A stretch of 64,000 bases of DNA from Heptranchias perlo (Eukaryota): assembly GCF_035084215.1 (NCBI RefSeq), contig NC_090338.1, positions 15,314,001 through 15,378,000 on the forward strand. The letters run 5' to 3'. Positions 18,115 through 63,653 of the stretch are shown one piece after another. The translations under genes and the position numbers were made by a program. How positions within the stretch are numbered: the stretch's first letter is position 1; the number at the start of each line of letters is the position of its first letter. The notes beneath the pieces are model-generated. The model was not told the origin of the DNA. It did not search any database and saw only the letters and a list, made by a program, of their open reading frames with translations.

Positions 18115-19452
18115 TGTCGGGGCTGGTGGTGTGTGTCAGCTTCATCTCTGACTTCTGAGCGGTCCGAATCGCTCCCACTCCCTGGGTTCTAGACCTTTGA
18201 CTTATTTGGGGGTTGTGACAAAGTGCAGCAGACAACTGCTTTTAGTGCAAGAAACTTTGACCTTTATTCAAGAGAGAAAATACAACACAACAATCTTAAC
18301 AGTCTAATAAAATGGGGAACACTTTGGTACACACGAGGGAAATTACAGTAGAAAGATACCTCACCCCTCCCAATCCCACTGTACTAGCTAGGTTGGACTC
18401 TAAAGGGCCAGAGATAATGCTCACCAAACGTATCTTTGACAGTAATTCACCCAGAGGTAAGTCAGAAATAGATTGTAGAGTGGAAACTTTGCGGATCTTT
18501 GGTTTTCTCCCGAGTTGGTTTTCTTTGGTCGCGGTGGCCCAATATTACCCGGTTGGTTGGTGGTAATATTCGGTTGGTTGTTCCGTAAGGCCCTTGTTGC
18601 CGCGAGGTGTCTGATGGTCACTGGGGCTGTTGCTCTGGTTTCTTCCTGTGTGTCGGCCTGCTTCTAGAGCTGCTGACCTTCCCCGTCGAACTGCCTTCCC
18701 CTCGCCTTGTTGTTTGCTGGAAACTGCTCTTCTTTCCAGACACAGGCAGAACCAAGACAAGCAGCCNNNNNNNNNNNNNNNNNNNNNNNNNNNNNNNNNN
18801 NNNNNNNNNNNNNNNNNNNNNNNNNNNNNNNNNNNNNNNNNNNNNNNNNNNNNNNNNNNNNNNNNNNNNNNNNNNNNNNNNNNNNNNNNNNNNNNNNNNN
18901 NNNNNNNNNNNNNNNNNNNNCACTTGTGGATGTCTCTCTTACAATTGGTCTTCGACCCTTTAAAAAAAACACTTCATGTCTGTTTAAACAGTTCTTACAA
19001 AGGCCTTAAGAATCTTTGATGGCTTTTTGATGGTCCCTCATCATGTTGCCATTGCTTCTCCCGATGGGTCATTGTTAATTCCGATTTGCTGATCACCTGG
19101 TTTACAGGCTTCCTTTTGTATCCAACATCCTAGGTGTTGATAGGTTTTGCATTAAAACAAAGACATGGCCCCACCATGTCTGGAGCAGTTGCCTCTTTCA
19201 ATGGCTGACTGCCTTTTGAATTCGTGCTGAGTGTCGACCACCTGCTGTCGGTTATGCATTAAAACAGAGTCATGTCTGAAGCATTAATTCTCTGAAGTTC
19301 CACGGTGTGTGTGTTGTTGATTTCACCTGGTGACCTCTCACCTATCCTTCCATTTTAGGATTATAGTCAATGGCCAAAGTTTTCCCATACTCAGGGTTTT
19401 TTAGGGTTTTTCTCCGGGTTTTGGGGGATCTGTGAATTTCGAGAATCTTACA
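18115..19452 (-). mobile_element. Probable solo LTR (or collapsed LTR element) inserted in a CR1 3' tail
   Basis: TGT...ACA termini; 4-bp TSD TCTG (18111-18114, 19453-19456); the host CR1 tail (~18030-19680) rejoins on removal; minus-strand AATAAA near 18263. Confidence 0.72.
18767..18920. other. Assembly gap (154 N)
   Basis: Run of n. Confidence 1.
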
Positions 19453-32085: not shown

Positions 32086-32157
32086 TTATTTAAATTTTGC
32101 TTGTGCTATTTGTGCATAGATAACAGATGAATCAGCTTCCTTTGAAGGAGTCAGGTT
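32086..32157 (-). CDS. Terminal coding exon [23 protein letters not shown] (ITIM/ITSM-like VIYAQI)
   Basis: ttctctcttgcag|AAC...AAATAA, phase 0, after a 140-bp intron. Confidence 0.85.
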   Translation of the reverse strand, partial: NLTPSKEADSSVIYAQIAQAKFK

Positions 32158-35100
32158 CTGCAAGAGAGAAATTAACCATTTATAATAATGTGAACTATTA
32201 CTGCATCTCTTTACATCAGATAACAACTTTACAAATTTGTTGCGGATATTAATATTGTAGGACGTGTGATTTCACCAATATGAATCTATATACTTACAGT
32301 ATCTGAAGATTGTTGATTGCCTTGTGTACCATGTCTGGACCCTGTGATAATTGCAAACACCACAATTAAAGGATAACACTGACAAAAAAAACTGACAATT
32401 GGCACACAAATATTCTCAACTTACTGCATTTCATCGTACAGCCAATGGATCAGCAAGACATTGATTGACAGTGAACCCAGTTTTCATCTGTATAACCCAG
32501 ATCCACACTAAGCACTGCATTTGCACAGGGAGCCATTGGGACGGTCATAAATGAACTAAGCTCCTGAAAAGACTCTGCAGAGTTTGAGAATTTCAGTGCC
32601 TTTTCAGCTTCAGATACCTGCTTTCATATAGAAAGCATAGAAATTACAGCACAGCAAGAGGTCATTTGGTCCATTGAATCGAGGCCGATGTTAACTGTTC
32701 ATCCGCAGCTTTCTATTCCAATCCCACTAATCTTTTATATGCCTCGTGTATTTTTAGATGATTGTAGTTTACAATTTATGCTCTATTAGATGTCGGGGTT
32801 GATTCTCCTGTTTCCTCCTTGCCCGGGTGGAGCAGACTCAAAATGGGATCTGCTTGTCCAGGCCTCAGGGTGCCTTAATTTAGTTGGGCAGGTCATTAGC
32901 ATGGTCTGATTAAACCCTGGTTGCAGGCCCACTTCCTAGAAGAGCTGTTCACTGGGAAACAGACAGAAAAAGAACCACAGCTGCAGGCCTGAGAAGACCT
33001 GAAACTGTGGGACAGGCCATCGGTCTCGGGGCCTTCTGGCTGTTGACCAGCAGTCAGTGGCTTAGTTCAAGCTTTCATGCCTGAAGATTGTTGGGAGATT
33101 GCAAGAGATAATGAACACTTACCTTTACGGCCTTGCTTGCCTATCCGTCTGGTCCCCTCAGACCCGAGGGGCTCCCAGGCACACGGCCCACTGTCAGCTC
33201 ATTCAGGTGCTGTTGGAAGTGATTGCTCTTCGGCTGAAACCACAGCAATGGGAGGGTGGAGAAAGTGGGAAATGCTCCTCCAGCCTTATTTCCATTGAAG
33301 CATGGGGACAACATAAAAGGAGCAGAGGTCCCATATTACAGATCACCACCCCTTTTTCCTACCATTAAGGTCCAGGGAATAAGTGTTTCCTAGCAACTGA
33401 TAGGAAAATCAGCCTTACTTATATCAACTTGGGAAGAATTGTCATAGTGCCTTTCACATCCTCAGGACATTTCAAAGCAAATTAAACACTTTTAATGTTT
33501 AGTTACTGTTTTAGGCAATGCGCCTCCAACAATACAACACTCCCTGAGCCTAGATTGTAGCAAGTAGGGTGTGAACCCATGACCTTCTCTCTCAGAGGTG
33601 GGAGTGCTACCCCTGAGCCAAGCTGGCAATCAGAAGGCTGAAACAAGTTTCTTTCTACACCACATGTTAAATTTTACATGGAAACATAGAAACATAGAAA
33701 ATAGGAGCAAGATCAGGCCATTCGGCCCTTCGGGTCTGCTCCGCCATTCGAAATGATCATGGCTGATCGTCTTACTCAGTACCCTGTTCCTACTTTTTCC
33801 CCATATCCCTTGATCCCTTTAGCATTAAGAAATATATCTATCTCGTTCTTGAATACATCTAATGACTTGGCCTCCACTGCCTTCTGTGGTAGAGAATTCC
33901 ACAGGTTCACCACCCTCTGAGTGAAGAAATTTCTCCTCATCTCGGTTCTAAATGGCATACCCCGTATCCTGAGACTGTGACACCTGGTTCTGGACACCTC
34001 AGCCATCGGGAACATCCTCCCTGCATCTAGTCTGTCTAGTCCTGCTAGAATTTTATATGTTTCGATGAGATCACCTCTCATTCTTCTAAAGTCTAGTGAA
34101 TATAGCCAAGTCTACCCAATCTCTCCTCATACGTCAGTCCTGCCTTCCCAGGAATCAGTCTGGTAAACATTTGTTGCACTCCCTCCATGGCAAGGACATC
34201 CTTCCTCAGATAAGGAGACCAAAACTGCACACAATACTCCAGATGTGGTCTCACCAAGGCCCTGTATAACTTCAGTAAGACATCCCTGCTCCTGTACTCA
34301 AATCCTCTTGCAATGAAGGCCAACATACCATTCGCTTTCCTAACTGCTTGCTGCACCTGAATGCTCGCTTTCAGCGACTGGTGTACAAGGACACCCAGTT
34401 CTCGTTGTACCTCCCCTTTTCCCAATCTATCACCATTCAGATAATAATCTGCCTTTCTGTTTTTACAACCAAAGTGGATAACCTCACATTTATCCACGAT
34501 ATACTGCATCTGCCATGTTCTTGCCCACTCAACCAACTTGTCTAAATCACATTGGAGCCTCTTTGCATCCTTCTCACAGCTCACATGTGTCATCTGCAAA
34601 CTTGGAAATGTTACATTTAGTTCCCTCATCCAAATCATTGATATATATTGTGAATAGCTGGGGCCCAAGCACTGATCCCTGCGGCACCCCACTAGTCACT
34701 GCCTGCCAACCGGAAAGAGACCCGTTTATTCCTACTCTCTGTTTCCTGTCTGTCAACCAATTCTCAATCCATGCCAGTATATTCCCCCCAATCCCATGTG
34801 CTTTAATTTTGCACACCAACCTCTTGTGTGGGAACTTATCAAAAGCCTTCTGAAAATCCAAATACACCACATCAACTGGTTCTTCCCTATCTATTCTACT
34901 AGTTACATCCTCAAAAAACTTCAGTAGATTTGTTAAGCATGATTTCTCTTTCATAAAGCCATGCTGACTTTGTCCAATCCCGTTAATGCCCTCCAAGTGT
35001 TCTGTTATCACATGGAGGCCATTAACGGGATTGGTCAAAGTCAGCATGGGTTTATGAAAGGGAAATCATTTTAAGTTCAGATGTGATATGATTCAAGAAT

Positions 35101-38100: not shown

Positions 38101-41100
38101 CCAGGTATGTCCTGTCCACAAAAAGCAGGACAAATTCAATCCGGCCAATTACCGCCCCATCAGTCTACTCTCAATCATCAGTAAAGTGATGGGAGGTGTC
38201 ATCGACAGTGCTGCCAAGTGGCACTTACTCACCAATAACCTGCTTACCAATGCTCAGTTTGGGTTCCGCCATGACCATTTGGCTCCAGACCTCATTACAG
38301 CCTTGGTCCAAACATGGACAAAAGAGCTGAATTTCACAGGTGAGGTGAGAGTGACTGCCTTTGACATCAAGGCAGTATTTGACCGAGTGTGGCACCAAGG
38401 AGCCCTAGTAAAATTGAAGTCAATAGGAATCAGGGGGAAAACTCTACAGGGGCTGGAATCATACCTAGCACAAAGGAAGATGGTAGTGGTTGTTGGAGGC
38501 CAATCATCTCAGCCCCAGGACATTGCTGCAGGAGTTCCTCAGGGCAGTGTCCTAGGCCCAACCATCTTCAGCTGCTTCATCAATGACCTTCCCTCCATCA
38601 TAAGGTCAGAAATGGGGATGCTCGCTGATGATTGCACAATGTTCAGTTCCATTCGGAACCCCTCAGATAATGAAGCAGTTTGTGCCCGCATACAACAAGA
38701 CCTGGACAACATCCAGGCTTGGGCTGATATGTGGCAAGTAACATTCACGCCAGACAAGTGCCAGGCAATGACATTCTCCAACAAGAGAGTGTCCAACCAC
38801 TTCCCTTGACATTCAACAGCATTACCATCGTCAAATCCCCCACCATCAACATCCTGGGGGTCACCATTGACCAGAAACTTAACTAGACCAGCCACATAAA
38901 TACTGTGGCTACAAGAGCAGGTCAGAGGCTGGGTACTCACCTCCTGACTCCCCAAAGCCTTTCCACCATCAACAAGGCACAAGTCAGGAGTGTGATGGAA
39001 TACTCTCCACTTGCCTGGATGAGTGCAGCTCCAACAACACTCAAGAAGCTCAACACCAGGACAAAGTAACCCGCCTGATTGGCACCCCTTCCACCAACCT
39101 AAACATTCACTCTCTTCACCACTGGCACACCGTGGCTGCAGTGTGTACCTTCCACAGGATGCCCTGCAGCAACTCACCAAGGCTTCTTCGACAGCACCTC
39201 CCAAACCCGCGACCTCCATCACCTAGAAGGACAAGAGCAGCGGGCACATGGGAACAACACTACCTGCACGTTCCCCTTCAAGTCACCCACCATCCCGACT
39301 TGGAAATATATCGCCGTTCCTTCATCGTCGCTGGGTCAAAATCCTGGAACTCCCTGCCTAACAGCACTGTGGGAGAACCTTCACTACACGGACTGCAGCG
39401 GTTCAAGAAGGCAGCTCACCACCACCTCCTCAAGGGCAATTAGTAATTGGCAATAAATGCTGACCTTGCCAATGATGCCCAGATCCCATGAACGAATAAA
39501 AAAAAATTGCCAGAAGGAATTCTGGCTTCCTGAAGCGCGTGCATCCAGATGCGTCTGGGTCGAACTCGAAAGTTGGTTGCCTGGAGCCAGGATTTATTCC
39601 TGCTCCGAAAAATATTGATTTGCTCTGCCCCCCACCCCCGTCCCCAACCCACCCGATCTTGGGGGCTAAAATCATGCCCTAGCATGATTAAGAATGAAGA
39701 CAAGCGATTTCAACGCTGCCTCAGCGTGTTTCCCGCGCTGTGTGAAACACGTCATAGTGAACGAGTCGTGTTTCAGCCAGCAGCCATTTGGACATTTAAA
39801 TGCCTGTTTGACAGATGGGGATAAAAGGTGAGTTATTGCAGTCGGGCACTCAGTTCTCTCAGACAAACTTTAGGCTGGAAGATCTTTGTGTTTAGACTGA
39901 AAATTCTTGGTTTCCACTCAGAATTGTTCTGTTTACACATATTTACCTCACCAGTTTTATTACCCAGCATTATCATTCCTCACCTTGATGAACACAAAAA
40001 TGAAAAATATAATAACAATGAAAAAAATTGCAATACCAAGCTTCATTACCTGGTGCTTTTTTCCGAAAAGCGACAGATGCGTAATGAATATCTTCTCTTT
40101 CTGTGTCTGCAGAGAATAAGAAAGAAATAAAGAGTTTGCATCTCTATATAGAGTTCCTTAACATAATCCAATGCACTTTCAATAATGCAGTACTCCCCTT
40201 GAAGTGTCACTCTGGAGTATGTGCTCAAGTCCTGAAGTGAGGCTTGAACACACAACATTCTGTCTCTGAAGTGACGGTGCTACCAAGTGAGCCAAGTTGA
40301 CTCATGAATTAGAGCATCAACATCACAGATCAGTTGCTGCAGATTTACTAAACAATGTCAATTAAAAACATAGCTCGCTGATCCGATTATCTTTTCCAAT
40401 TTTCTTCTCTTTTCTCTCACCTCTCTTGACTCTCACTCGGTTATGGTTCCACAAGTACTGACAGTCCTCCAGTATATAACTCAAATGTTCTTCATGTGTG
40501 AGCCTGGATATTAAGGGCTCGATTTTAAAACGGAACTGCGGGAATGTTGGGGGCGGGGGTGGGGGCGAAGAAAAACACGATTTCCGGGAGCGAGGGAGAA
40601 ATCCCAGCTCCAACATGCCTAATAAGGTGCACGACCCAGAGTCATCTGGGTGTGTGCACCAATCCCGAACCCGGAAGTCCCTCCGGCAATTAAAGCCGAG
40701 GTATTTGAAGTACTTGAAATGTACATGAATCTAATTAAGAATGAAGACAAGCGATTTCAACGCTGCCTCAGCGTGTTTCCCGCGCTGTGTGAAACACGTC
40801 ATAGTGAACGAGTCGTGTTTCAGCCGGCAGCCATTTGGACATTTAAATGCCTGTTTGACAGATGGGGATAAAAGGTGAGTTATTGCAGTCGGGCACTCAG
40901 TTCTCTCAGACAAACTTTAGGCTGGAAGATCTTTGTGTTTAGACTGAAAATTCTTGGTTTCCACTCAGAATTGTTCTGTTTACACATATTTACCTCACCA
41001 GTTTTATTACCCAGCATTATCATTCCTCACCTTGATGAACACAAAAATGAAAAATATAATAACAATGAAAAAAATTGCAATACCAAGCTTCATTACCTGG

Positions 41101-44100
41101 TGCTTTTTTCCGAAAAGCGACAGATGCGTAATGAATATCTTCTCTTTCTGTGTCTGCAGAGAATAAGATAGAAATAAAGAGTTTGCATCTCTATATAGAG
41201 TTCCTTAACATAATCCAATGCACTTAACATCCAATGAATTACTTTTAAAATGGAAGTACTGTTGTCAGGTAAACAAACACAGAATTCAAGGTTCCAAAAG
41301 CATTAAATAAGATAACAACTCGTTAACTTCTTGTGGTGGTCTTGGTTGAGGGAAGAATATAAATCAGGACAACTCCCTGCTCTCCAATTATACAATGATA
41401 TTTTTAACATGCACCTAAACAGGTCTCAACTGAAAGACGGCACTTTCAATAATGCAGTACTCCCCTTGAAGTGTCACTCTAGAGTATGTGCTCAAGTCCT
41501 GAAGTGAGGCTTGAACACACAACATTCTGTCTCTGAAGTGACGGTGCTACCAAGTGAGCCAAGTTGACTCATGAATTAGAGCATCAACATCACAGATCAG
41601 TTGCTGCAGATTTACTAAACAATGTCAATTAAAAACATAGCTCGCTGATCCGATTATCTTTTCCAATTTCCTTCTCTTTTCTCTCACCTCTCTTGACTCT
41701 CACTCGGTTATGGTTCCACAAGTACTGACAGTCCTCCAGTATATAACTCAAATGTTCTTCATGTGTGAGCCTGGATATTAAGGGCTCGATTTTAAAACGG
41801 AACTGCGGGAATGTTGGGGGCGGGGGTGGGGGCGAAGAAAATCACGATTTCCAGGAGCGAGGGAGAAATCCCAGCTCCAACATGCCTAATTGGTGCACAC
41901 ACCCAGAGTCATCTGGGTGTGTGCACCAATCCTGAACCCGGAAGTCCCTCCGGCAATTAAAGCCGAGGTATTTGAAGTACTTGAAATGTACATGAATCTA
42001 ATTAAGAATGAAGACAAGCGATTTCAACGCTGCCTCAGCGTGTTTCCCGCGCTGTGTGAAACACGTCATAGTGAACGAGTCGTGTTTCAGCCGGCAGCCA
42101 TTTGGACATTTAAATGCCTGTTTGACAGATGGGGATAAAAGGTGAGTTATTGCAGTCGGGCACTCAGTTCTCTCAGACAAACTTTAGGCTGGAAGATCTT
42201 TGTGTTTAGACTGAAAATTCTTGGTTTCCACTCAGAATTGTTCTGTTTACACATATTTACCAACTTTTTGGACCCCTCAAACTGACACCATCAGGATGGG
42301 GGGCCGTGATGGCTGCATTCACCAGTACACCCGAGGACGAGCAACATCACCATCCTCACCAGGCACGGTGTGCACTTCCGCCACTTGCAGTTCCACAACA
42401 CAGTGCTGCGTCACAAGGACCCGCACAAGACCACAGAGGGGAACAACAGAGGGAGCGACATTGCAGGAGACACTACCCTCGTCAGAGGGTCTACAGACTG
42501 AGGCTCAGATTCCTGGACCTCTCTGAGGAGCAGTGCATACAGAGGCTGAGAGTGAGTCGCCAGGTGGTCGCAGACATCTGCAGCCTCCTTCATGCCGAGC
42601 TGCTCCCGGCTGGGCCTGGTGGCATCTCATTACCCATCGCAGTTAAACTGATCACTGCCCTTAACTTCTTCGCCTCCGGATCATTCCAGGGTGCCACCGG
42701 TGGTATCGCTGGGGTTTCTCAGTCATCTGCACACAAGTGTTTAAATGTTACCTTGCATTTGCTGTATTTCATTAGCATTTGAATAAAGCTGAGATGCATC
42801 TTCTCTACTTTCCCTTGGCTGCAGAGGTTTCTGTCTTTGATTTTCCAAACCTGTTCATACAGAGGTCACCTATTAAGATGCATTCAACTTTCCTCATAAC
42901 TTTCACACATTCTAATAAACAAACTCAGTTTTAAAATGGTCCATTAGCACAGATATTTTTTTCAAGTATGAAAGACATTGTGACAAGATATTATGGATAT
43001 CTCTGTATACACTAGATACAGACTTCGCGAGGCATTGCTGACCAACTTATTTACTTGTTGTTGAAGATTGTGGATTCAAGCCCCAGTTTAGGACATGAGC
43101 ACATAATCGAGGCTGATACTTTAGTGCAATACTGAGGGAGTGCTGCACTGTCAGAGGTGAATGGGATATTAAACCGAGACTCTGTCTGCCTGTTCAGTTG
43201 GATGTAAAGCATCAAAGTGCACAGAGTGCTTCCAGTGTCCTGGCCAAAATTTCTCCGTCAGCCAACACCACCAAAATACAGACCAAGTGATCATTCATCT
43301 CATTTGCTGTTGTGGGAGCTTCATTAGTTCAAATTGATTGCTATGTTTGCCTAGATAACAGCAGTAACTACACTTCAAAAGTAATTTGTGAAATGCTGTA
43401 GGACATCTTGAGGACATGATAGTGCCTTGCAGGACTAGTGATCCAGAGGCTTGGACTAATAATCCAGTAGAACGTGAGTTCAAATCCCACCATGGCAGTT
43501 TGAGAATTTGAATTCAGTTTAAAAAGAAAATCTAAAAAGAAATAGCTGGTATCAGTAAAAGTGGCCATGAAGCTATCGGATATCAGTTAAAGGCCTGTTC
43601 ACTAGTGTCCTTCAGAGAAGGAAACCTGCCTTCTTTAGCCGGTCTGGCCTACATGTGACTCCAGTCCTGCACCAATGTGGTTGACTCTTAACTGGCCTCT
43701 AAAGTGGTCTAGCAAGTCACTCATTTGTATTATAGGCAACTAGGGATGGGCAATAAATGCCGGTCTTGCCAGCGACCCCCACATCCTGAGCATTTTTTAA
43801 AAATGTGATGCTGAATAAATGGAAGCTCTCTCCTTTACTTCACATGTGATCACATGTCTTATTTTCCTTCCCCAATTTTCCCCGATTATCGGGGTACAGT
43901 TCCATGGGCAATGGCAGACTACTGCTACCTCATGCAAATGGCCATGTGGGTATGGACGGTGTGCATAGTTGGATTACTCATCTGTAGACACCAGCACATT
44001 TGAGTCTAATTGTGTCCTCATTAAATGTTATTATACTTGCACATCTAACAATCAGAGGCACTTCTCTTCCCGAGGAGGGCAGGAGATGGGAGAAACTAAT

Positions 44101-47100: not shown

Positions 47101-50100
47101 CTACGTTAAAGGCGCTATATAAATGCAAATTGTTGTTGTTGTTGTTGATTTTTGACCAATTGCATAGCCTAGTATAGAACTCACATCATTCTAGCAGTTC
47201 AGGAACCAATGCCTTTCTAGAATGTTTGACACGTAGAAAACAAACACATCTATTTATCTAATCCTAGTGGATTATATCATTTAATTTTAAACAAAGATAT
47301 AATTGTCATTCCTAATTTTTGGAATCATGTGCCACATTCACATTTTCTTACATGGATGAAACCTGAAATTAGTTGCAGCAATTTACAAATCTTACCTGCT
47401 GCCTTGAACTTTCTTAAACACAGCACCACTACCAGGATAATGATGAGGAGAAGAGCCAGACTCCCAAAAATAACAACATTGGTATGTTTAAAAGTGTAAC
47501 CATCTGTCAGAAGAATAAAAATAGATTTTCCATTTAGTTTACAGGTTAATTTTTTTTAAGCTCCCCTAATGACCCATTGGATAAAATTGCTGTCTGATTT
47601 ACCACCAAACTGTACAGACCAGAAGGTCTTAGGTTTAATTCCTGATCCAAGTTAACTGACCTCACTCAGGATCGTCGGAGTGCTACAATTATCCTCATTG
47701 CTCGTCAGTTAATGACAGGTAAAAAAATCACACAGGGCTCTCATTCCCAGTTACAATCTAGTGATTCCTTCTGGAAAAGAGATGTGTGCAAATGACTGGT
47801 AAGAAAAGGATGCGATTCAGCTGTGATGCTTCCACTGTACAATAGGTCAACGATACTCATTGTCTAGGCTTATACTTGAATAATTCCATTTGAATGAGAA
47901 CTCACTCAATGGGGTAGATCTTGACTTTGTGCGATAGTGTAAAACGGGTGGAAATAAAAATGGGGAGAGATGTAAAACAGGCTGCCGACTCGTTATCACC
48001 CGTGTTTTTTCTTTTTTTATTTGTTCATGGGATGTCGTCGTCGCTGGCGAGGCCAACATTTATTGCCCATCCCTAATTGCCCTTGAGAAGGTGGTGGTGA
48101 GTCGCCTTCTTGAACCGCTGCAGTCCGTGTGGTGAAGGTTCTTCCACAGTGCTGTTAGGAAGGGAGTTCCATGATTTTGACCCAGTGATGATGAAGGAAC
48201 AGCGGTATATTTCCAAGTTGGGATGGTGTGTGACTTGAAGGGGAACGTGCAGGTGGTGTTGTTCCCATGTGCCTGCTGCTCTTGTCCTTCTAGGTGGTAG
48301 AGGTCGTGGATTTGGGAGGTGCTGTCGAAGAAGCCTTGGCGAGTTGCTGCAGTGCATCCTGTGGATAGTACACACTGCAGCGAATGTGCGCCGGTGGTGA
48401 AGGGAGTGAATGTTTAGGGTGGTGGATGGGGTGCCAATCAAGCGGGCTGCTTTGTCCTGGATGGTGTTGAGCTTCTTGGGTGTTGTTGGAGCTGCACTCA
48501 TCCAGGCAAGTGGAGACTATTCCATCACACTCCTGACTTGTGCCTTGTAGATGGTAGAAAGGCTTTGGGGAGCCAGGAGGTGAGTCACTCGCCGCAGAAT
48601 ACTCAGCCTCTGACCTGCTCTGTTAGCCACAGTATTTATATGGCTGGTCCAGTTAAGTTTCTGGTCAATGGTAACCCCCAGGATGTTGATGGTGTGGGAT
48701 TCGGCGATGGTAATGCTGTTGAATGTCAAGGCAAGGTGGTTAGACTCTCTCTTGTTGGAGATGGTCATTGCCTGGCACTTGTCTGGAGCGAATGTTACTT
48801 GCCACTTATCAGCCCAAGCCTAGATGTTGCCAGGTCTTGCTGCATGCGGGCTCGGACTGCTTCATTATTTGAGGGGTTGTGAATGGAACTGAACACTGTG
48901 CAATCATTAGCGAACAGTCCCATTTCTGGCCTTATGATGGAGGGAAGGTCATTGATGAAGCAGCTGAAGATGGTTGGGCCTAGGACACTGCCCTGAGGAA
49001 CTCCTGCAGCAATGTCCTGGGACTGAGATGATTGGCCTCCAACAACCACTACCATCTTCCTTTGTGCTAGGTATGACTGCAGCCACTGGAGAGTTTTTCC
49101 CCTGATTCCCATTGACTTCAATTTTACTAGGGCTCCTTGGTGCCACACTCGGTCAAATGCTGCCTTGATGTCAAAGGCAGTCACTCTCACCTCACCTCTG
49201 GAATTCAGCTCTTTTGTCCATATTTGGACCAAGGCTGTAATGAGGCCTGGAGCCAAGTGGTCCTGGCGGAACCCAAACTGAGCATCGGTGAGCAGGTTAT
49301 TGGTGAATAAGTGCCGCTTGATAGCACTGTTGATGACACCTTCCATCACTTTGCTGATGATTGAGAGTAGACTGATGGGGCGGTAATTGGCTGGATTGAA
49401 TTTGTCCTGCTTTTTGTGGACAGGACATACCTGGGCAATTTTCCATATTGTCGGGTAGATGCCAGTGTTGTAGCTGTACTGGAACAGTTTGGCTAGAGAC
49501 GCAGCTAGTGCTGGAGCACAAGTCTTCAGCACTACAGCCGGGATGTTGTCGGGGCCCATAGCCTTTGTTTTATCCAGTGCACTCAGCCGTTTCTTAATAT
49601 CACGTGGAGTGAATCGATTTGGCTGAAGACTGGCTTCTGTGATGGTGGGGATATCGGGAGGAGGCCGAGATGGATCATCCACTCGGCACTTCTGGCTGAA
49701 GATGGTTGCAAATGCTTCAGCATTGTCTTTTGCACTCACGTTTTACACTGTTGCACAAAGTCAAGATCTATCCCAACATGGGAGGAGACGAGGAAAAAGG
49801 AGAAAACTGGCAGAGAATTAGCAACAAAAATTGGTACAGTATCTTTCTGGCCATAATATTTAGCAAAAATTAATCCTTGACAATACAACCTAAGTAATGA
49901 CACCACAACGCATATTAGAGCAACAAGACACTACCATGGAATGAGTTTGTGGTCATGATGTGCCACAAACTAAATGTCCAATCTCAGTCAGGGTTTCAGA
50001 AGGAGGTTGGAAAAGTATGGTGAGCGTTCCCCTGGGAGGGAGAAAAAATACAGCGACAACAACTCTCCTCATACTTTTCTCATGCACCTCCCTGTGGCAG

Positions 50101-53100: not shown

Positions 53101-56100
53101 GGATCCCATGAAATCTCATGGCATCAGGTCAAACATGGGCAAGGAAACCTCCTGCTAATTACCACCTACCGTCCTCCCTCAGCTGATGAATCAGTCCTCC
53201 TCCATGTTGAGCACCACTTGGAGGAAGCACTGAGAGTAGCACGGGCACAAAATGTACTCTGGGTGGGGGACTTCAATGTCCATCACCAAGAGTGGCTCAG
53301 TAGCACCACTACTGACCGAGTTGGCCGAGTCCTGAAGGACATAGCTGCCAGACTGGGCCTGCGGCAGGTGGTGAGCGAACCAATACGAGGGAAAAACTTA
53401 CTTGACCTTGTCCTCACCAATCTACCTGTCGCAAATGCATCTGTCCATGATAGTGTTGGTAGGAGTGACCACCGCACAGTCCTCGTGGAGACGAAGTCCC
53501 GTCCTCGCACTTAGGACACCATCCAACGTGTTGTGTGGCACTACCACCGTGCTAAATGGGATAGATTCAGAACAGATCTAGCAGCTCAAAACTGGGCATC
53601 CATGAGGCATTGTGGGCCATCAGCAGCAGCAGAATTGTATTCCAGCACAATCTGTAACCTCATGGCCCGGCATATTCCTCACTCTACCATTACCAACAAG
53701 CCAGGGGATCAACCCTGGTTCAATGAGGAGTGTAGAAGAGCATGCCAGGAGCAGCACCAGGCGTATCTAAAAATGAGGTGCCAACCTGGTGAAGCTACAA
53801 CTCAGGACTACATGCATGCGAAACAGCGGAAGCAACATGCTATAGACAGAGCTGAGCGATTCCACAACCAACGGATCAGATCAAAGCTCTGCAGTCCTGC
53901 CACATCCAGTCATGAATGGTGGTGGACAATTAAACAACTAACGGGAGGAGGAGGCTCTGCAAACATCCCCATCCTCAATGATGGCGGACTCCAGCACGTG
54001 AGTGCAAAAGACAAGGCTGAAGCGTTTGCAACCATCTTCAGCCAGAAGTGCCGAGTGGATGATTCATCTCAGCCTCCTCCATTAACCAGAAACTTAACTG
54101 GACCAGCCATATAAATACTGTGGCTACGAGAGCAGGTCAGAGGCTGGGTATTCTGCGGCGAGTGACTCACCTCCTGACTCCCCAAAGCCTTTCCACCATC
54201 TACAAGGCACAAGTCAGGAGTGTGATGGAATACTCTCCACTTGCTTGGATGAGTGCAGCTCCAACAACACTCAAGAAGCTCAACACCATCCAAGATAAAG
54301 CAGCCCGCTTGATTGGCACCCCATCCACCACCCTAAACATTCACTCCCTTCGCCATCGGCGCACAATGGCTGCAGTGTGTACCATCCACAGGATGCACTG
54401 CAGCAACTCGCCAAGGCTTCTTCGACAGCACCTCCCAAACCCATGACCTCTACCACCTAGAAGGACAAGAGCAGCAGGCACATGGGAAAAACACCACCTG
54501 TACGTTCCCCTCCAAGTCACACACCATGCCGACTTGGAAATATATCGCCGTTCCTTCATCGTCGCTGGGTCAAAATCCTGGAACTCCCTTCCTAACAGCA
54601 CAGTGGGAGAACCGTCACCACACGGACTGCAGCAGTTCAAGAAGGCGGCTCACCACCACCTTCTCAAGGGCAATTAGGGATGGGCAATAAATGCTGGCCT
54701 AGCCAGCGATGTCCACATCCCATGAACGAATAAAAAAAAGAAGAGTTTCTCTGAGCCTGAAGAGTGGAGAGCTTCAATTGCAATGTTTGCAGCTGGGAAT
54801 TACATTTTGCTGTGATTTTTTTGAACATTCTGCCTCAGCATTCTGATTGATTTTGTTCAGAAAATGCTCCATTTTGCTGTCAAAAAGAAATGCTTACCCT
54901 GGCTCAGTGTGTTTACCGAGACCGTAGCTGAGACATACAGACCAGGAAGTTTCCACGCTCGATCTCAGGCAGTTCTGAGTTATCTCAGGGTAAATTTTCT
55001 GAGGTTCTGCACCACTGGTAGAGCCTCACACACAGGATATAAAGGAGGGGTTACATCTGGCAAAAAGAACAATAGGTGACAAGAATATTCTATCGAGAAT
55101 ATAAGTATAAAGAGCAAAACCTGAGTCACTTACCACTGGGCTCCAGATAGTACGGGACTAAAACCAGGGGCCTGTTTTGATAAAACAAAACACATATCCA
55201 GTTCTCTCTGCCTCTGTCAACTTTCTGAATATTCAGTCTCAATGATTTCTCTTCCCCATTCCATCCATTCAATGTTTTATTTCCTACAGTTTTGCCATCA
55301 CTATTGATCCAAACAAGTCTGATTGATTCAGTGACATCAGAGACAGAGCAGGTCAGGGTAACGTTGTGTCCCTCAGTCACTGCATCAGATGGTTCAGCTG
55401 TGACTGTGTAAACAACAAAATCATTTAGATTTTAAACAATGACTTTATCACTGAAAACAACAAAATTCTGTCTCCTACCTTTAACTGTGATTAGTTTAAT
55501 GATCACATATTTAGTTGATCCCAGAGAACATGTGTAAACTCCGGCATCTTCAAACAGTACAGGGACAATCCTCACACTGAAGTTCTTGCCATTAAAATTT
55601 GCCATTGTGGGAACCAGTCTTTTCCCAAAGTAGGTCCTGTTTACATTGATGAGCTCAGATTTTGAAGCAGATGCTATTTTTTTCTCCTGATTCTGAAGAT
55701 GATGTGACCTCCAGGTCCATTCAGCAGTATCGTAAGAATGATCATAATTATTATAATAATCATAGCAAATCAGGCGGAGTTCACTGTGACCTGTGCCTGA
55801 TCGATAAAGTGTGTAATTCTCACCATCTAAATCTGCAATAGAAAGACAGAGAACAAAGTGTGAGAATTTTACAGTTACTGAGATACAGAGAAAAGCCAGA
55901 ATAATTACCGCCCACAATTATATAAAACTAATTGGGTTTTGATCATCATAACTGCATTTGATAACATTTTTTCAAAGCTATGAACTGTTTAAGAATGGTA
56001 AAGCTTGGATGAATTCAATTCACAAAAGGCAGTGGAAATTTATAAAAATGAAACTTTTTTGTTTTTTAATATGATGAGATTTTTGTGCCATGGATGACAC

Positions 56101-59100: not shown

Positions 59101-62100
59101 AGATAACTGAACTTACATTGGGTCATGGAAAAATCAGCTTTGATAAGGACGGATCCACTTTCCTGCACTTCACACACGTACAACTCCTTATCCTCTACTG
59201 CAACATGTCTGACCATCAGATAATCTGTGTTCTTTATTCGGATCTGATCAGTGTTCCTCCTGTTCTGCTGAGATGAGTCCCTTTGTTTCCATTGAAGACT
59301 GACTGTATCTGAGAGTTTGGAGATGGTGCAGCTGAGTATAACGTCACTGCCCACCACAGCACTCTGTGGACTTGACTCAACTGTGAAAAACAGATATATA
59401 ATATGTAGTACAGTTTACTGTAAGTAGTGGCATGCTAGAACAATTAAGTTCCAACTGGCATTAAGATGTACCCATTATCAGCATTTGTACCTTGTTTCAT
59501 TAAAGGGTCAGACCAGATTACACACAAATGCATCTCAGCAGTAGAATAACACAGTGGGGCCGAAGATTCTCAGTCCTGCTCCACCAGCAGAAGTGTGGCA
59601 GAGCGGGGCCGGTGACCTTTACTCCTGATCCTGCCCGAGTATCCGGGGTCAGGTCAAGGTTACACAGTTTGGATGGCATTTGTGGGATGCCCACACCACA
59701 ATGGACAGGTGATGGAAACTCATCAGAGGAGGGTGTGCTGGAAATGTATCCCCTGTATTATCGGACTTGAAGTAGGTTCAAAGCCTACTGTGTTCTCAAT
59801 GTGCCGAGCACACTTCAGTAAGACCTCCCAACACATGCACTGGGAATCTGTGCACAAAATCCACATCAAAGGTCATTACAGCCCCAGAAATTATTTAAAT
59901 TATGGGGCTCCCAAAATGCATCTGGACACGGCTCTAATTATTGTGCATCGAAAATGGAATGGCACTTCAGGAGAGGCTTGTTCTAAAAATGCCCACCCTA
60001 ACTTTCGGTCCCACCTACAACATGACAAGTAATAATCAAATCTTGAACAGGGACTTTTTTCCAAGACCAGGCCAAATAAATAGTGGCAACAATTGGTTGC
60101 CGACGTCCAACGCTCTGGTGCCCGACCCATGTGTCATTCCCCGTGTACCATGCACTGTGTACCATGAGCAGCGTTAAAAATTGTAAATGAGTTGACTTTC
60201 TATTATGGTCAACTCATTCTGGTTCATTTGGGGTCTACACTTCAGGAGCAATGGTCCAGGGCGAGTACAGTCAGGATCATATTTTCGTCTCTGTGACACT
60301 TCATGATTGGATTATATTTTGTATCAACTTCATTTGACAGTGACCTGAGCCTCATTTAGATGTTAAACACATGAACCAACCACAATATGTCACTATTTAG
60401 TGATATTCTTAGTTGGCAGAAGTTAATTTTTTAGAGAGCACATCAGTGTACAGACCATAATACTCTCTGGTGGACAGATTTCCTCACTTTGCTATTTCTG
60501 GTGAAGTTATCAAAAAGTCTGTAATCATGTTGACCATTTCAGGAGAAATAATGAACAAATCTTTCCCCTGGTTGTTTTAATGAGAGATGCACGCTGCAGT
60601 GGGTGATATAAATCTCACATGATCCTGGCAATCTCTAATCTTTACAGATGAAATTAGTTACGGAGAATCATATTCTTGAACCTTTTCTAGTCTTTATCCC
60701 ACTCACATTTGACCCCAAATATTTCATACTGTTTCAGGATTTTATTTCTCGACCATTCCTGAGTCAAGATGAACAATCCCGCAAATTCAAACGTGGAATT
60801 TCTAATTCTCAGATTAATGGTACCACGATCCAGCTGTATCTTCGAGTACAAGTCGCTGTTTCTAAAGTGATCGCTCCATTGTACTTTCCACCAGCCCGTA
60901 TTAGTTTTGTAAAAAGTACCCATCTCCTGGATTGGTTGCCCTGAGTGTGGTTTCCATTCCCAGACAACAGGGTCATTTCCAGGATTGTCTGGTCCTTTTA
61001 ATGAAACGTCATCTCTCTCATCCAAAAAATAAATATGATTTGGGTTTCCTGTTAGAAAGAATAACAATGTAAACATTTTAATATCAAATCAAAACTCTTT
61101 AATCCCATGTTTGGAAAAATTAATATTGGACTTTGTTTTGTTACAGTCACTTTTTTATATTCAATGGTTCAGCAATGACACAGACACACCCCTGTGAAGA
61201 GCTGTCTGTCTGGAATAATCAGGCCTAATCCAATGATACTTTAGGACATTAGAGGGTAAATTTATGCCACTGCACTCTGACCTTGTGGGCTGGTGGTATC
61301 CAATTTCACAATATGTATTTCCAGCATTTACCGGGAGTGCGGAAGGGGAATCGTTGCTCCCATATTGTGAAGAAATTTGGAATAACATCACAATAATCAG
61401 TATTTTCCTAAAATTGAATACGATACTGATGCAATCATATCACTTCAGAATCAAAAATCAAGTCAGTGATCTCCAAAAGTGGTCTCCTCTCCTCTTGTGC
61501 AATGCACAGTAAGTTGTTGCTTCTCCTGGACCACCGGTGACCAGGCTACCCACAGGAGCACCTATAACAAAGGGAGGCAGGATTTCCCACATTACCATAA
61601 TCTGGCTGTAGGTCAGCGTGACGGACTCTGTCTTCCCCTACCGCAAACACCAGGGAATTTCCTGAGGCCAGCCTAATTTCCATAATTATGGCGACTCCTT
61701 GCAGGGTTCGTGCTCTGATCCGAGGAACCCACGTGGGAGAGGGAGGAAGATGATTGCTGCAGGTCTCGAGTGCTTTCAGCAGCAGATCAGGACTGACTAC
61801 CTGTGAGGCAGCTGAAGAGGAGGGGCAACTTTTGAAAATTTACAAATTTGGCTGTGTGATTGATCACACTTGCTTCAGAAAGATCTTTGAAACTTAAATC
61901 CCCTCCTGCACACCATTGCAACACTGGATGCTGGGAACATGCTGCTGTTCTTTGTGTTCCAGCATTGCTATGGCGATAATGATGGAAAATGTAACATCTG
62001 ATAACACTTGGCCACTACAAATAATTTGAATAAAGCTGTCCATATTTGGGTCCACATATTCAGTGAAGTGACAACAATCTGCAGGGAGCAGGTCGCCGGA

Positions 62101-63653
62101 TCCCATTACAATCCCAAGAATCTGGCAAGTGTCCTTGATTGTGGAGTTGGTTAAATTCCATGTGGCAAAAAATAAAGGCTCTACATGTCCTTACGACTCC
62201 TGGTCTACAGGGGGCAGTATCGGGGTGGACAGGAGTGAGCCGAAGAGAAATTGGGGAAGGATACGTTTATGTCGGGACTCCACCCCATTTGTCCTTGACG
62301 GGGTTCCTTGAGGTGGGAGGAGATCAGGTGGTTCCTGCTTCCCGACCTCCTCTTGTCTAAAAACACACCGTGACAAAGATAAACCAACTCTTGGAACCTG
62401 ACTTACAGCCTCTTTCCACCAGGTGCTTCGCCTTAGCTGTGAAAGATGACAACAACAACTTGCTTTTATATCCTGCTTTTCATGTAATAAAACTGCCCAA
62501 GTTGCTTCACAGGAGCGTAATCAAACAAAATTTGACACCGAGCCACATAAGGAGAAATTAGAACAGGTGACCAAGAGCATGATCACAGGGGTAGGTTTCA
62601 AGGAGCATCTTAAGGAAAAGAGCGGTAGAGAGGTGGAGAGGCTTAGGAAGGGAATTCCAGATCTTAGGGACTAGGCGGCTGGAGGCACAGCCACCAATGG
62701 TGGAGAGATTGAAATCCGGGATGCGCAAGAGGGCAGAATTGGAGGACCGCTGAGATCTCGGAGGGCTGTAGGGCTGGAGGAGGTTACAGAGATAGGGAGG
62801 TAACAAATGTCGCTGTGAAAGTGAGAAAGGCACTTAATGTTTGTGCATTCAGATACTTCGAGGGGACCTCTGATGACATTAGTTACATCATTCAGTCAGC
62901 AGTTAATCACTACCGTTCCCTGGACTGCATTTCCACCTTCGAATCATCATCTATCCTTCATTTCAAGGGTAACAGTAAACAAATAAAATACTCATTATAA
63001 CCAAATATTTTATCTACAATTTCATAAGGGAAGTTATCTAAAGCAGTAAAACCCATATATCTGTGAGTCTTGATTAAATAGCAACTCACATCACAAATAC
63101 CAAAAATAAAATAAGAACATAAGAACATAAGAAATAGGACAGGAGTAGGCCAATCGGCCCCTCGAGCCTGCTCCGCCATTCAATAAGATCATGACTGATC
63201 TGATCCTAACCTCAAATCTAAATTCATGTCCAATTTCCTGCCCGCTCCCCGTAACCCCTAATTCCCTTTACTTCTAGGAAACTGTCTATTTCTGTTTTAA
63301 ATTTATTTAATGATGTAGAATTGGCTCCATGCACACTGTATTCACTGTAAAGTTTAAACACAAAGTTTGGACACTAAACCAGATGTAACCAGATGACAGA
63401 TGAATGGATAAACAGAGTGATAGATGGATCGGGGAAAGGAGTTGAAGAGCGAACTTACTCATCCTGTTTAAAGGAGCAGGAACATGAAAATAAAGACCTT
63501 ACTTGCTTTCTGAATAGTCAGTGCGTGATTTCATTAAACACGATGATAAAGTCAAACAATATGAATGTGATTGGTGGAAAAAAGGCACTTACTCTGAGTA
63601 AAAACAGACCGAAGTAGAAACACAAAGAAACTTAACATCAAACCAGCTGACAT
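32086..63653 (-). CDS. Multi-exon Ig-superfamily type I receptor, 4 Ig domains (V-C2-V-C2), CD4/LAG-3-like ectodomain layout with ITIM-bearing tail. Exons: 63653-63593, 61048-60707, 59380-59117, 55832-55479, 55403-55134, 47503-47396, 42850-42752, 41153-41097 and/or 40106-40050, 32341-32298, 32157-32086
   Basis: Manually assembled. Every exon is bounded by AG/GT; all introns are phase 1 except the last (phase 0); there is no internal stop. CDS is 1671 nt (556 aa) with one ITIM exon or 1728 nt (575 aa) with both. Family assignment comes from domain layout only. Confidence 0.88.
32298..32341 (-). CDS. Cytoplasmic exon [15 protein letters not shown]
   Basis: aattatcacag|GG...GATACT|gtaagt, 44 nt, phase 1-0. 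Confidence 0.8.
33680..35068 (-). mobile_element. 5'-truncated CR1-like LINE with short inverted duplication at its 5' end
   Basis: [16 protein letters not shown]; (aacataga)n tail; 35012-35068 is the near reverse complement of 34939-34994. Confidence 0.9.
35245..35609 (+). mobile_element. 3' end of the poly(A)-tailed CR1/L2-group LINE family
   Basis: Matches 39150-39507 and 54385-54739; ends aataaaaaaa. Confidence 0.85.
36500..39679 (-). mobile_element. PIF/Harbinger element with degenerate HARBI1-like DDE transposase (~36500-37540), interrupted by a LINE
   Basis: [50 protein letters not shown], then LGDMEYPL in another frame; first catalytic Asp reads Asn; terminus AAAATCATGCCC at 39679. 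Confidence 0.85.
37961..39507 (+). mobile_element. 5'-truncated poly(A)-tailed CR1/L2-group LINE (RT domain)
   Basis: [35 protein letters not shown]; A-tail at ~39497-39507. Confidence 0.92.
40050..40106 (-). CDS. Cytoplasmic ITIM exon, copy 2 (identical to 41097-41153)
   Basis: Same 57 nt and same splice sites, 1047 bp from copy 1. Confidence 0.75.
41097..41153 (-). CDS. Cytoplasmic ITIM exon, copy 1: [19 protein letters not shown]
   Basis: cttattctctgcag|AC...GCACCAG|gtaatg, 57 nt, phase 1-1. IHYASV fits ITIM (I/V/L/S)xYxx(L/V/I). Confidence 0.82.
41782..42740 (+). mobile_element. PIF/Harbinger 5' portion with transposase N-terminus, truncated; partial copies at 40514-40992 and 39687-39945
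   Basis: Starts GGGCTCGATTTT like 4904; ORF 42306-42782 [31 protein letters not shown]. Confidence 0.88.
42752..42850 (-). CDS. Cytoplasmic exon 1 [33 protein letters not shown]
   Basis: tatgaacag|GT...ATGCAAG|gtaaca, 99 nt, phase 1-1, open. Contains YSN. The polypyrimidine tract is weak. Confidence 0.75.
43070..43420 (+). mobile_element. Deu-domain SINE-like element (SacSINE1/AmnSINE1 type); a degraded minus-strand copy lies at ~41220-41570
   Basis: GCTGATACTTTAGTGCAATACTGAGGGAGTGCTGCACTGTCAGAGGTG resembles the Deu core as recalled; B-box-like GGATTCAAGCCC upstream. Confidence 0.6.
43430..43790 (+). mobile_element. SINE-like non-autonomous element sharing internal and 3' sequence with the poly(A) LINE family
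   Basis: B-box-like GAGTTCAAATCC (~43476); 43673-43730 matches 52683-52739; 3' AGGGATGGGCAATAAATGC..CCACATCC matches the LINE tail. Confidence 0.7.
44775..46170 (-). mobile_element. 5'-truncated CR1-like LINE
   Basis: [21 protein letters not shown]; (catagaat)n tail. Confidence 0.9.
46170..47146. mobile_element. Two L2-like 3' fragments in opposite orientation (46170-46850 -, 46855-47146 +)
   Basis: [41 protein letters not shown]; (ttg)n tail at 47130-47146. Confidence 0.8.
47396..47503 (-). CDS. Transmembrane exon [36 protein letters not shown]
   Basis: attcttctgacag|AT...GCAGCAG|gtaaga, 108 nt, phase 1-1. About 21 hydrophobic residues with no charged residue, then Cys and a basic stop-transfer RKFK. 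Not in the ORF track. Confidence 0.9.
47911..49774. mobile_element. MITE with ~40-bp TIRs split by a LINE insertion
   Basis: Left GGGGTAGATCTTGACTTTGTGCGATAGTGTAAAA; right TTTTACACTGTTGCACAAAGTCAAGATCTATCCC resumes at 49741. Confidence 0.8.
48004..49740 (-). mobile_element. 5'-truncated poly(A)-tailed CR1/L2-group LINE (RT + 3' end)
   Basis: ORF 48795-49739 with RT motifs (FADD reads FAND); T-run tail at ~48004-48022. Confidence 0.93.
50430..51620. mobile_element. Fragmented CR1-like (+, ~50430-50810) and L2-like (-, ~51040-51620) remnants
   Basis: Similarity to intact family members in this window; (atgatact)n and (aac)n tails. Confidence 0.7.
52683..54739 (+). mobile_element. Poly(A)-tailed CR1/L2-group LINE with 5' region, APE endonuclease and 3' end but RT deleted
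   Basis: [27 protein letters not shown]; junction at ~54080 joins pre-RT to post-RT sequence relative to 48004-49740. Confidence 0.9.
55134..55403 (-). CDS. Ig domain 4 exon (short C2-like, WxC in F strand)
   Basis: tttacacag|TC...CCCAGTG|gtaagt, 270 nt, phase 1-1, after a 75-bp intron. [21 protein letters not shown]. Confidence 0.93.
55479..55832 (-). CDS. Ig domain 3 exon (V-set)
   Basis: tctattgcag|AT...GTTAAAG|gtagga, 354 nt, phase 1-1. [29 protein letters not shown]. Confidence 0.93.
56210..57320 (-). mobile_element. L2-like LINE 3' portion with (aac)n tail
   Basis: [39 protein letters not shown]; (aac)n at ~56211-56237. Confidence 0.85.
57325..57830 (+). mobile_element. Internal fragment of the poly(A) LINE family
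   Basis: [23 protein letters not shown]. Confidence 0.85.
57830..58880 (-). mobile_element. Old, highly degraded CR1-like fragment
   Basis: Recognisable residual similarity to CR1 ORF2 3' half (ccaaaatgcattaccacacacttctc, gcatccaaagcaaattttga). Confidence 0.6.
59117..59380 (-). CDS. Ig domain 2 exon (short C2/I-like)
   Basis: gtttttcacag|TT...ACCCAAT|gtaagt, 264 nt, phase 1-1. [30 protein letters not shown]. Confidence 0.92.
60707..61048 (-). CDS. Ig domain 1 exon (V-like, no cysteines)
   Basis: ctttctaacag|GA...GTCAAAT|gtgagt, 342 nt, phase 1-1. DVSLKG (B strand), VVWEWK (C strand), [18 protein letters not shown] (E-F strands), YEIFGVK (G strand). Confidence 0.85.
62450..62800 (-). mobile_element. 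L2-like 3' fragment
   Basis: [16 protein letters not shown]; (aac)n tail. Confidence 0.8.
63115..63318 (-). mobile_element. CR1-like 3' tail, near-identical to 1410-1610
   Basis: Direct sequence match including (aacataag)n. Confidence 0.9.
63593..63653 (-). CDS. Leader exon (signal peptide) [20 protein letters not shown]
   Basis: Minus strand reads ttttctgcag|caaaATG...ACTCAGA|gtaagtg. Hydrophobic 20-aa leader ending in phase 1. The acceptor just upstream (exon start 63657) implies an additional 5'UTR exon, possibly beyond the window. Confidence 0.8.

Follow-up and report, generated by a model that had tools for sequence, protein, structure and literature searches.

The 64,000-nucleotide stretch of Heptranchias perlo DNA analyzed here (contig NC_090338.1 of RefSeq assembly GCF_035084215.1, positions 15,314,001 to 15,378,000; called "the window" below, with positions counted from its first letter) carries on its minus strand, from 63653 to 32086, a gene that is quite probably an intact and transcribed type I receptor gene of an old, unnamed multigene family of the immunoglobulin superfamily (IgSF), with an ectodomain resembling those of CD4 and LAG-3, a cytoplasmic tail bearing immunoreceptor tyrosine-based inhibitory motifs (ITIMs) and a paired activating partner. 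The gene is one of many members of this large family and is itself already in RefSeq under an uncharacterized entry; a preliminary description of the same DNA had treated it as a singular gene, a view that has to be given up.

Gene Model

The gene model is confirmed, its eleven exons being equal to the RefSeq protein XP_067852155.1 (575 aa, "uncharacterized protein [Heptranchias perlo]"), referred to below as P0052, the public protein on which all whole-length analyses were run. Exons were read from the sequence, with their borders set by script; there are 11 coding exons, every intron is GT..AG, and the exon lengths total 1728 nt, i.e., 575 codons and a stop. Junctions are in phase 1 through to the exon called E9 below, which exits at phase 0, so that the last exon, with the motif VIYAQI and the stop codon, is in frame. 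The exons, in which D1 to D4 stand for the four Ig domains and TM for transmembrane, are as follows:

E1, 63653..63593, minus strand: start codon and signal peptide (+1 nt), with donor gtaagt; equals the N-terminus of P0052
E2, 61048..60707, minus strand: D1, V-like, cysteine-free; phase 1-1
E3, 59380..59117, minus strand: D2, C2/I-set (LSCTIS..LQWK..LYVCEV), with YxC rather than WxC
E4, 55832..55479, minus strand: D3, V-set (Pfam V-set E 5.1e-7); used as the phmmer query
E5, 55403..55134, minus strand: D4, C2 (LTCSVS..LVWIN..NWICVLF), with WxC in strand F
E6, 47503..47396, minus strand: stalk, TM helix and RKFKAA stop-transfer; helix at residues 431-466 in the structural model
E7, 42850..42752, minus strand: first tail exon, with the YxN motif LYSN at 42788..42777
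E8a, 41153..41097, minus strand: symmetric 57-nt exon with the ITIM IHYASV at 41136..41119
E8b, 40106..40050, minus strand: identical tandem copy of E8a, with the second IHYASV at 40089..40072
E9, 32341..32298, minus strand: 44-nt exon, phase 1 to 0, located via the public protein
E10, 32157..32086, minus strand: C-terminal ITIM VIYAQI at 32124..32107 and stop codon at 32088..32086

The uncharged TM helix lies at 47477..47415, the WIC of strand F in D4 (NWICVLF) at 55200..55192 and the corresponding YVC of D2 (LYVCEV) at 59180..59172. The preliminary description had read here a complete spliceable gene with a leader, V-C2-V-C2 domains, an uncharged TM segment and a tail, with WxC in D4 and YxC in its place in D2, and all of this is borne out by the GT-AG exons and their identity with P0052. 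Pfam recognizes a V-set domain on D3 and Ig domains on D2 and D4; the D1 exon, which encodes zero cysteines, matches no Pfam family when searched alone. P0052 contains six N-glycosylation sequons.

Each exon translation is present in P0052, and a tblastn search of the window with P0052 falls on exactly the same exons. A phmmer search of 1.84 billion representative proteins with the D3 exon also returned, as a 100% identical match, XP_067852158.1, a shorter isoform. With homologues at E = 0 and with splice joints found at the predicted borders in RNA contigs, as detailed below, the gene is therefore not a product of chance.

Transcription and Isoforms

Contigs from four runs (X1 to X4), all made from one sample, were placed on positions 55100-61080. 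The joint between D1 and D2 (59380>60707) is carried by contigs of X1 and X2 and, shifted by +1, of X3; the joint between D2 and D3 (55832>59117) in 4/4 runs; and the joint between D3 and D4 (55403>55479) in X1 and X2. Each of the three reads CT..AC on the plus strand, that is GT..AG on the gene strand, and one 605-nt contig of X2 links D1, D2 and D3. These spliced joints, together with the 605-nt contig, indicate that the runs do contain RNA, D1 included: the Ig part of the gene is transcribed and spliced as predicted. RNA reads had been proposed as a check on the predicted gene, and for the Ig exons, in this one sample, they place the joints D1-D2, D2-D3 and D3-D4 at the predicted borders.

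RefSeq lists two in-frame isoforms (P0002 and P0074), of which isoform X3 (461 aa) skips D1 and isoform X2 (485 aa) skips D4; the symmetry of the Ig exons, in phase 1-1, allows such skipping. The joint that would skip D1 is out of view here, the leader exon lying beyond the stretch covered by the contigs.

Some contigs depart from the regular pattern. One of X1, 1386 nt long, runs unspliced over the whole D1-D2 intron (59351-60736), be it a retained intron, pre-mRNA or library DNA. One of X3 joins 55816 to 59117 with 16 other letters between them, beside the regular 55832>59117 joint, as a paralogue transcript or a variant splice would do. Within the D2-D3 intron, at 56300-56700 and 57300-57900, the summed word depth of the contigs peaks near 129,000, and odd joints and loose ends are many; what lies there are abundant repeats, transcribed or multi-copy, that form no part of the gene.

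Cytoplasmic Tail and Duplicated ITIM Exon

The tail of P0052 spans residues 462-575, that is 114 aa in the RefSeq model, where both copies of the 57-nt exon are included, or 95 aa with one copy only. The length of about 97 aa given previously is, thus, close to the one-copy form and too short for the RefSeq model. The tail carries the YxN motif LYSN, IHYASV twice and VIYAQI, the last two sequences making three canonical ITIMs; the multi-ITIM tail with LYSN, IHYASV and VIYAQI announced in the preliminary description has all these motifs, IHYASV even twice, although LYSN, being a YxN motif, is not an ITIM. P0052 shows the features by which ITIM receptors are recognized, namely a type I topology, a signal peptide, an uncharged TM segment and at least one (S/I/V/L)xYxx(I/V/L) (here IHYASV, twice, and VIYAQI). 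Its tail tyrosines stand in YSNA, in YASV, which occurs twice, and in YAQI, the final two lying at a distance of 39 residues, and the P0052 tail contains no ITAM (immunoreceptor tyrosine-based activation motif) of the form Yxx(L/I)x6-12Yxx(L/I). The LYSN-type motif recurs in the family tails of sharks and eels.

The ITIM exon sits inside a tandem duplication in which 39687-40178 and 40734-41225 are the same but for 2 mismatches, at an offset of 1047. Both 57-nt copies are included in the RefSeq proteins of the gene (P0052, P0002 and P0074); of the 169 proteins, out of 196 collected, that match a rough signature of the family, only these three isoforms and P0084 and P0149 contain two IHY-type motifs. 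Two of the three ITIMs derive from a recently duplicated exon. The same region (39687-42300) contains a further partial copy, 89% alike, at 42001-42300, and a second repeat family with a spacing of 1267.

Other ways of assembling the tail were considered and rejected. A direct splice from E8 to E10 is ruled out by its phase (phase 1 against the needed phase 0) and would read EPDSFKGS*; and the "SEYATV" tail exon carried by other family members has no match in the window.

One has to ask whether the gene yields a working inhibitory receptor as modelled, since the terminal ITIM exons might be unused, or the duplicate exon an artefact, with a product that is shorter or soluble. The gene model has the following weak points. 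The reads cover the Ig exons only, so the joint of D4 to the TM exon, 7.6 kb away, and those of the tail rest on the RefSeq model; the RNA comes from a single sample, and contigs of 95-99% likeness may partly stem from paralogues; the exon duplicate might stem from an error of assembly, its 492 bp showing just 2 mismatches. The RefSeq isoforms without D1 or D4 and the unspliced contig over the D1-D2 intron would also agree with such a product. We accept the D4-TM-tail join because the RefSeq model gives it and because the same order of tail exons, with conserved motifs, is found in shark and ray relatives. Every exon is open and flanked by good splice sites, and the tail of the neighboring paralogue P0062, a protein with 8 Ig domains, is near-identical and includes one ITIM exon. 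A gene that does not work as an inhibitory receptor is, on this balance, very improbable.

An Unnamed Family with Paired Forms

The phmmer search with the D3 exon gave 51 matches at E<=1e-3. Searching 6704 candidates with P0052 gave 118 matches at E<=0.001. With three exceptions, they come from sharks, rays and the chimaera Callorhinchus; the exceptions are one protein of the coelacanth (E 8.5e-47) and two weak matches in teleosts, labelled "CD22-like". Profile searches of protein databases returned family members and a few teleost "CD22-like" proteins, with no CD4, LAG-3 or G6fL among the matches. D3 also matches, more weakly, proteins with four domains in sturgeon, bichirs and elopomorph fishes, which share the landmarks of the family, WxC in D4 among them. 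The names of the members seen are either "uncharacterized" or automatic (obscurin-like, VCAM1-like, CEACAM5-like, CD276 homolog), and many members, at about 850-1000 aa, have eight Ig domains. We found no published description of the family in a literature whose coverage was thin for subscription journals and came without supplements.

In an alignment of 24 members, ITIMs of the I(H/Q/E/R)Y type are present in 20, mostly with a C-terminal (V/I)IYAQ(I/V); three combine a short tail and a TM lysine, and one has a truncated tail. WxC is found in D4 of 22 members, and D2 has YxC in 20 and W in none. Among the domains, conservation between orthologue-like relatives is lowest in D1 (49-60%, vs. 69-83% for D4), which fits ligand contact at D1.

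The activating side of the family is exemplified by P0093, a paralogue of H. perlo on the same chromosome (73,985,925 bp), which is identical to P0052 at 85.8% in D1, 87.5% in D2, 96.6% in D3 and 90.1% in D4 and which continues in its C-terminal part with a lysine-bearing TM segment, VSGYLFVKLGVAIGLICC, followed by a short tail. Family forms with a TM lysine also occur in Pristiophorus and Pristis. A near-identical ectodomain on a lysine-bearing TM segment and a short tail, as in P0093, makes the family one of paired inhibitory and activating receptors. The possibility that the gene of the window itself holds an alternative TM exon of the activating type was discarded, residues 433-506 of P0093 matching nothing in the window.

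The bony-fish relatives, P0023 (sturgeon), P0033 (bichir) and P0030, P0041 and P0044 (elopomorphs), keep D1 to D4 and the WxC of D4 on different tails: those of sturgeon and bichir end in YxN (IYDNV..IYENC, IYENV), and those of P0030, P0041 and P0044 have YSN and the ITIM-like VLYSTI/VVYSSV. The nurse shark record P0078 (AGQ17915.1, "obscurin-like protein") reads ...FGKSKIEALATRGKCRRYISALFKY after its TM segment, which resembles the +1 frame of the first tail exon of the window; it may contain a frame shift or reflect a different tail splice.

Resemblance to CD4 and LAG-3

The sequence itself already points to a doubled ectodomain. By hhalign, D1 pairs with D3 at 93% (E 3e-7) and D2 with D4 at 91% (E 1e-6), and the four cross pairs stay at 10% or below: the ectodomain consists of one V-C2 unit duplicated in tandem, as D1-D2 and D3-D4. 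A V-C2 tandem duplication is also what has been proposed (PMC10768021) as the origin of the CD4/LAG-3 ectodomain. When the family profile A1 was searched against 177,635 PDB sequences, human LAG-3 came first (7tzg_C, E 1.3e-9), with mouse LAG-3 at 5.7e-8 and CD4 (9oaj_C) at 1.6e-7; the alignment to LAG-3 lays the end of D3 and the whole of D4 onto the end of D1 and D2 of LAG-3, including LtCSVS/LnCSFS and the WxC.

The three-dimensional comparison is based on a model that AlphaFold predicted for P0052 from the family alignment, with a predicted template modelling score (pTM) of 0.64 and block means of the predicted local distance difference test (pLDDT) mostly between 76 and 94 over the ectodomain. 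D1 is modelled with a V-domain fold at a pLDDT of 82-92, and unbroken strands lead from D1 into D2 (residues 123-138) and from D3 into D4 (329-344), so that each domain pair is predicted to be a rigid rod held by one continuous strand, an architecture known from CD4 and LAG-3 and perhaps common to teleost G6f-like as well. Foldseek places LAG-3 at ranks 1 and 2 of the PDB (8dgg_A, 9.4e-16; 7tzg_D) and CD4 at ranks 4 (1wio_A) and 8-10. In a second look with VIA-align, the top four are four-domain CD4 chains (7t0r_A, Z 18.6 with 314 residues aligned; 7t0o_H, 18.1; 1wio_A, 16.5; 3t0e_E, 15.7), and the next-best chains have Z 14.2. D3-D4 superimposes on D3D4 of rat CD4 (1cid) at Z 13.5-13.6, with a root-mean-square deviation (rmsd) of 2.5-2.6 A over 170/177 residues. 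Structure prediction and fold search, which had also been proposed as a check, speak for the likeness. A structure search of the ESM Atlas has CD4, CD4-1 and g6f-like clusters among its ten rows, all with a template modelling score (TM-score) <0.5 and to be read as leads only.

A different explanation is that the gene encodes a generic IgSF inhibitory receptor, nearest to CEACAM, CD22/Siglec, B7 or nectin/CAR, and that its likeness to CD4 and LAG-3 is convergent or a noise of models and rankings. Several results weigh on that side of the balance. CEA (3.5e-8) and MXRA8 (4.6e-8) come near LAG-3 in the profile search. Single exons searched against PDB sequences gave no significant match to CD4 or LAG-3, the best being CD4 D1 with the D2 exon at E 0.01-0.03, and Pfam yields generic Ig families only; PF05790, the CD4-type C2-set, has no match in P0052 at E<=1 and is matched by two of the 24 aligned members, at a best E of 0.0051. 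The weak teleost matches are labelled "CD22-like". D2 has YxC where the CD4/LAG-3 type has WxC. In a wide VIA search independent of Foldseek, the V domains of nectin-1 (14.3), NITR11 (14.1), JAML (14.1) and MPZ (13.9) tie with CD4 D3D4 (13.6), and LAG-3 is at rank 29; AlphaFold may, moreover, lean towards folds of its training set. The automatic names CEACAM5-like, VCAM1-like, CD276 homolog and obscurin-like go the same way, as does the tail pattern xHYAxxxF ... xIYxxI, which we take to recall the tails of CEACAM1 and of CD33-type Siglecs.

A generic receptor nevertheless leaves four features to be accounted for: LAG-3 or CD4 comes first in three rankings of different kinds; CD4 D3D4 is the sole two-domain match below 3 A rmsd over the whole target; the WxC of D4 is kept in nearly all aligned members; and the V-C2 unit is tandemly duplicated, as PMC10768021 proposes for CD4 and LAG-3. 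We regard the generic reading as quite unlikely. The likeness to CD4 and LAG-3 is real, and its specificity lies in the two-domain module; it is likely, as judged by resemblance, that the family shares a closer common descent with them than it does with the rest of the IgSF.

Comparison with Named Receptors

Resembling CD4 and LAG-3 does not make the gene either of them. According to PMC10768021, a CD4 tail is recognized by a Cx(C/H) LCK-binding motif and a LAG-3 tail by (F/Y)xxL(D/E). The gene shares with CD4 a four-domain V-C2-V-C2 rod, the strand running from V into C2 (in the model), a tail of several exons and an unsplit D1 exon as in shark CD4. It differs in having ITIMs in its tail, in a sequence identity of only 12-17% in structural alignments and in the missing PF05790 match; it is not CD4 because its tail is free of cysteine and, hence, has no Cx(C/H). 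With LAG-3, it shares the V-C2-V-C2 ectodomain, the WxC in the last C2 domain, the inhibitory character of the tail and the place of best PDB match, both by profile (7tzg_C) and by Foldseek (8dgg_A, 18% identity). It differs by its canonical ITIMs, by the YxC of D2, by belonging to a multigene family with activating partners and by a VIA Z of LAG-3 of only 11.8-12.9; it is not LAG-3 because (F/Y)xxL(D/E) is absent and because the tail is spread over five exons after the TM exon, where that of LAG-3 is a single exon (PMC10768021).

The preliminary description had rightly noted that the tail lacks both the CD4 motif and that of LAG-3. It had also taken the unsplit D1 exon as a difference from both, which does not hold: shark CD4 and LAG-3 genes likewise have no D1 intron, as stated in Takizawa 2023 (PMC10768021). 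Its overall proposal, that the gene is neither CD4 nor LAG-3 and may belong to a related and poorly characterized inhibitory lineage, is supported by the three canonical ITIMs, by the absence of the CD4 and LAG-3 motifs and by the profile, Foldseek and VIA rankings.

The gene could also be a much-expanded cartilaginous-fish counterpart of teleost G6f-like and tetrapod G6F, in which case its role, like that of the thrombocyte receptor G6f-like, would be in thrombocytes, e.g., in sensing collagen, instead of in recognition by lymphoid or myeloid cells. This possibility overlaps with a relationship to CD4 and LAG-3, because Ohashi 2010 is reported to have noted a resemblance of G6f-like itself to them. 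Two Atlas clusters standing beside those of CD4 speak for it, "putative g6f-like" (TM-score 0.44, 241 aligned) and "g6f-like isoform X9" (0.39), with the restriction already made for scores of this size. As described in Hughes 2012 (PMC3528668), G6fL has four Ig-like domains, a TM segment and a tail whose conserved YxN binds Grb2; the first tail exon of our gene likewise has LYSN, and the sturgeon and bichir relatives end in YDNV/YENC/YENV. The same text, however, has G6fL signal through an activating ITAM split over two exons, whereas the shark tail has ITIMs and no ITAM, and the large shark multigene family with its activating partners is unlike G6fL as described there (PMC3528668). These comparisons are based on the published description of G6fL. 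No G6f-like name occurs in any of the family protein lists, and the G6F reading appears unlikely to us, if worth keeping in mind.

As to the CD4/LAG-3-like receptor with a paired partner that we favor, its organization is shared by KIR, LILR, SIRP, the fish NITR/LITR and the skate MDIR, which are multigene systems with near-identical ectodomains on forms with either ITIMs and an uncharged TM segment or a short tail and a basic TM segment. Presumably, the domain type and order, V-C2-V-C2 or eight Ig domains, set the shark family apart from KIR, LILR, SIRP, NITR, LITR and MDIR, and none of these names occurs in any of the family protein lists.

Surrounding Window

The introns of the gene and the 32 kb downstream of it are filled with open reading frames of retroelements and transposons (2092-4119, 14439-15410, 36763-37215, 48798-49739 and 52885-53511). 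Matches in the window include reverse transcriptase RVT_1 (E 2.5e-29, 1.2e-28 and 7.8e-8), endonuclease Exo_endo_phos_2 (E 4.9e-11 and 3.4e-14) and a fragment of the transposase DDE_Tnp_4 (E 2.5e-8). The 64-kb window, which also contains a 154-N run at 18767-18920, showed no further host gene.

Proposed Function and Meaning for the Family

ITIM receptors have an established mode of action, in which Src-family kinases phosphorylate the receptor and SHP-1/SHP-2 or SHIP then bind. By analogy, a ligand would be bound by D1, the outermost and most variable domain, and this binding would place the receptor beside activating receptors; Src-family kinases would phosphorylate the ITIM tyrosines, and SHP-1/SHP-2, perhaps SHIP (tandem-SH2 phosphatases), would dock there and damp the activating signals. 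P0093, the form with a TM lysine, would associate with an ITAM adaptor whose TM segment bears an acidic residue and give the opposite signal; as in KIR, LILR and SIRP, P0052 and P0093 would together make up a paired receptor system.

CD4 and LAG-3 are the two MHC (major histocompatibility complex) class II-binding molecules of jawed vertebrates, and human-type adaptive immunity is oldest in sharks. A far-reaching conjecture, which we hold to be improbable, would make CD4 and LAG-3 the survivors of a formerly larger V-C2-V-C2 family that cartilaginous fishes and some early-branching bony fishes have kept as fast-duplicating paired receptors, as a counterpart of MHC-sensing receptors of NK or myeloid cells such as KIR/LILR, with some D1 domains binding MHC.

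To our knowledge, no paired inhibitory/activating family comparable to KIR or LILR has been well described for sharks. The gene analyzed here reveals such a family, large, extending from chimaeras to rays and with relatives in coelacanth, sturgeon, bichir and eels, and of interest for innate recognition in sharks; it provides a frame and names for more than 100 proteins that are now "uncharacterized" or mislabelled as obscurin-, VCAM-, CEACAM- or CD276-like. If the relatedness to CD4 and LAG-3 is true, the origin of these two molecules, ITIM inhibition as the ancestral state and the ligands of the family would become testable questions.

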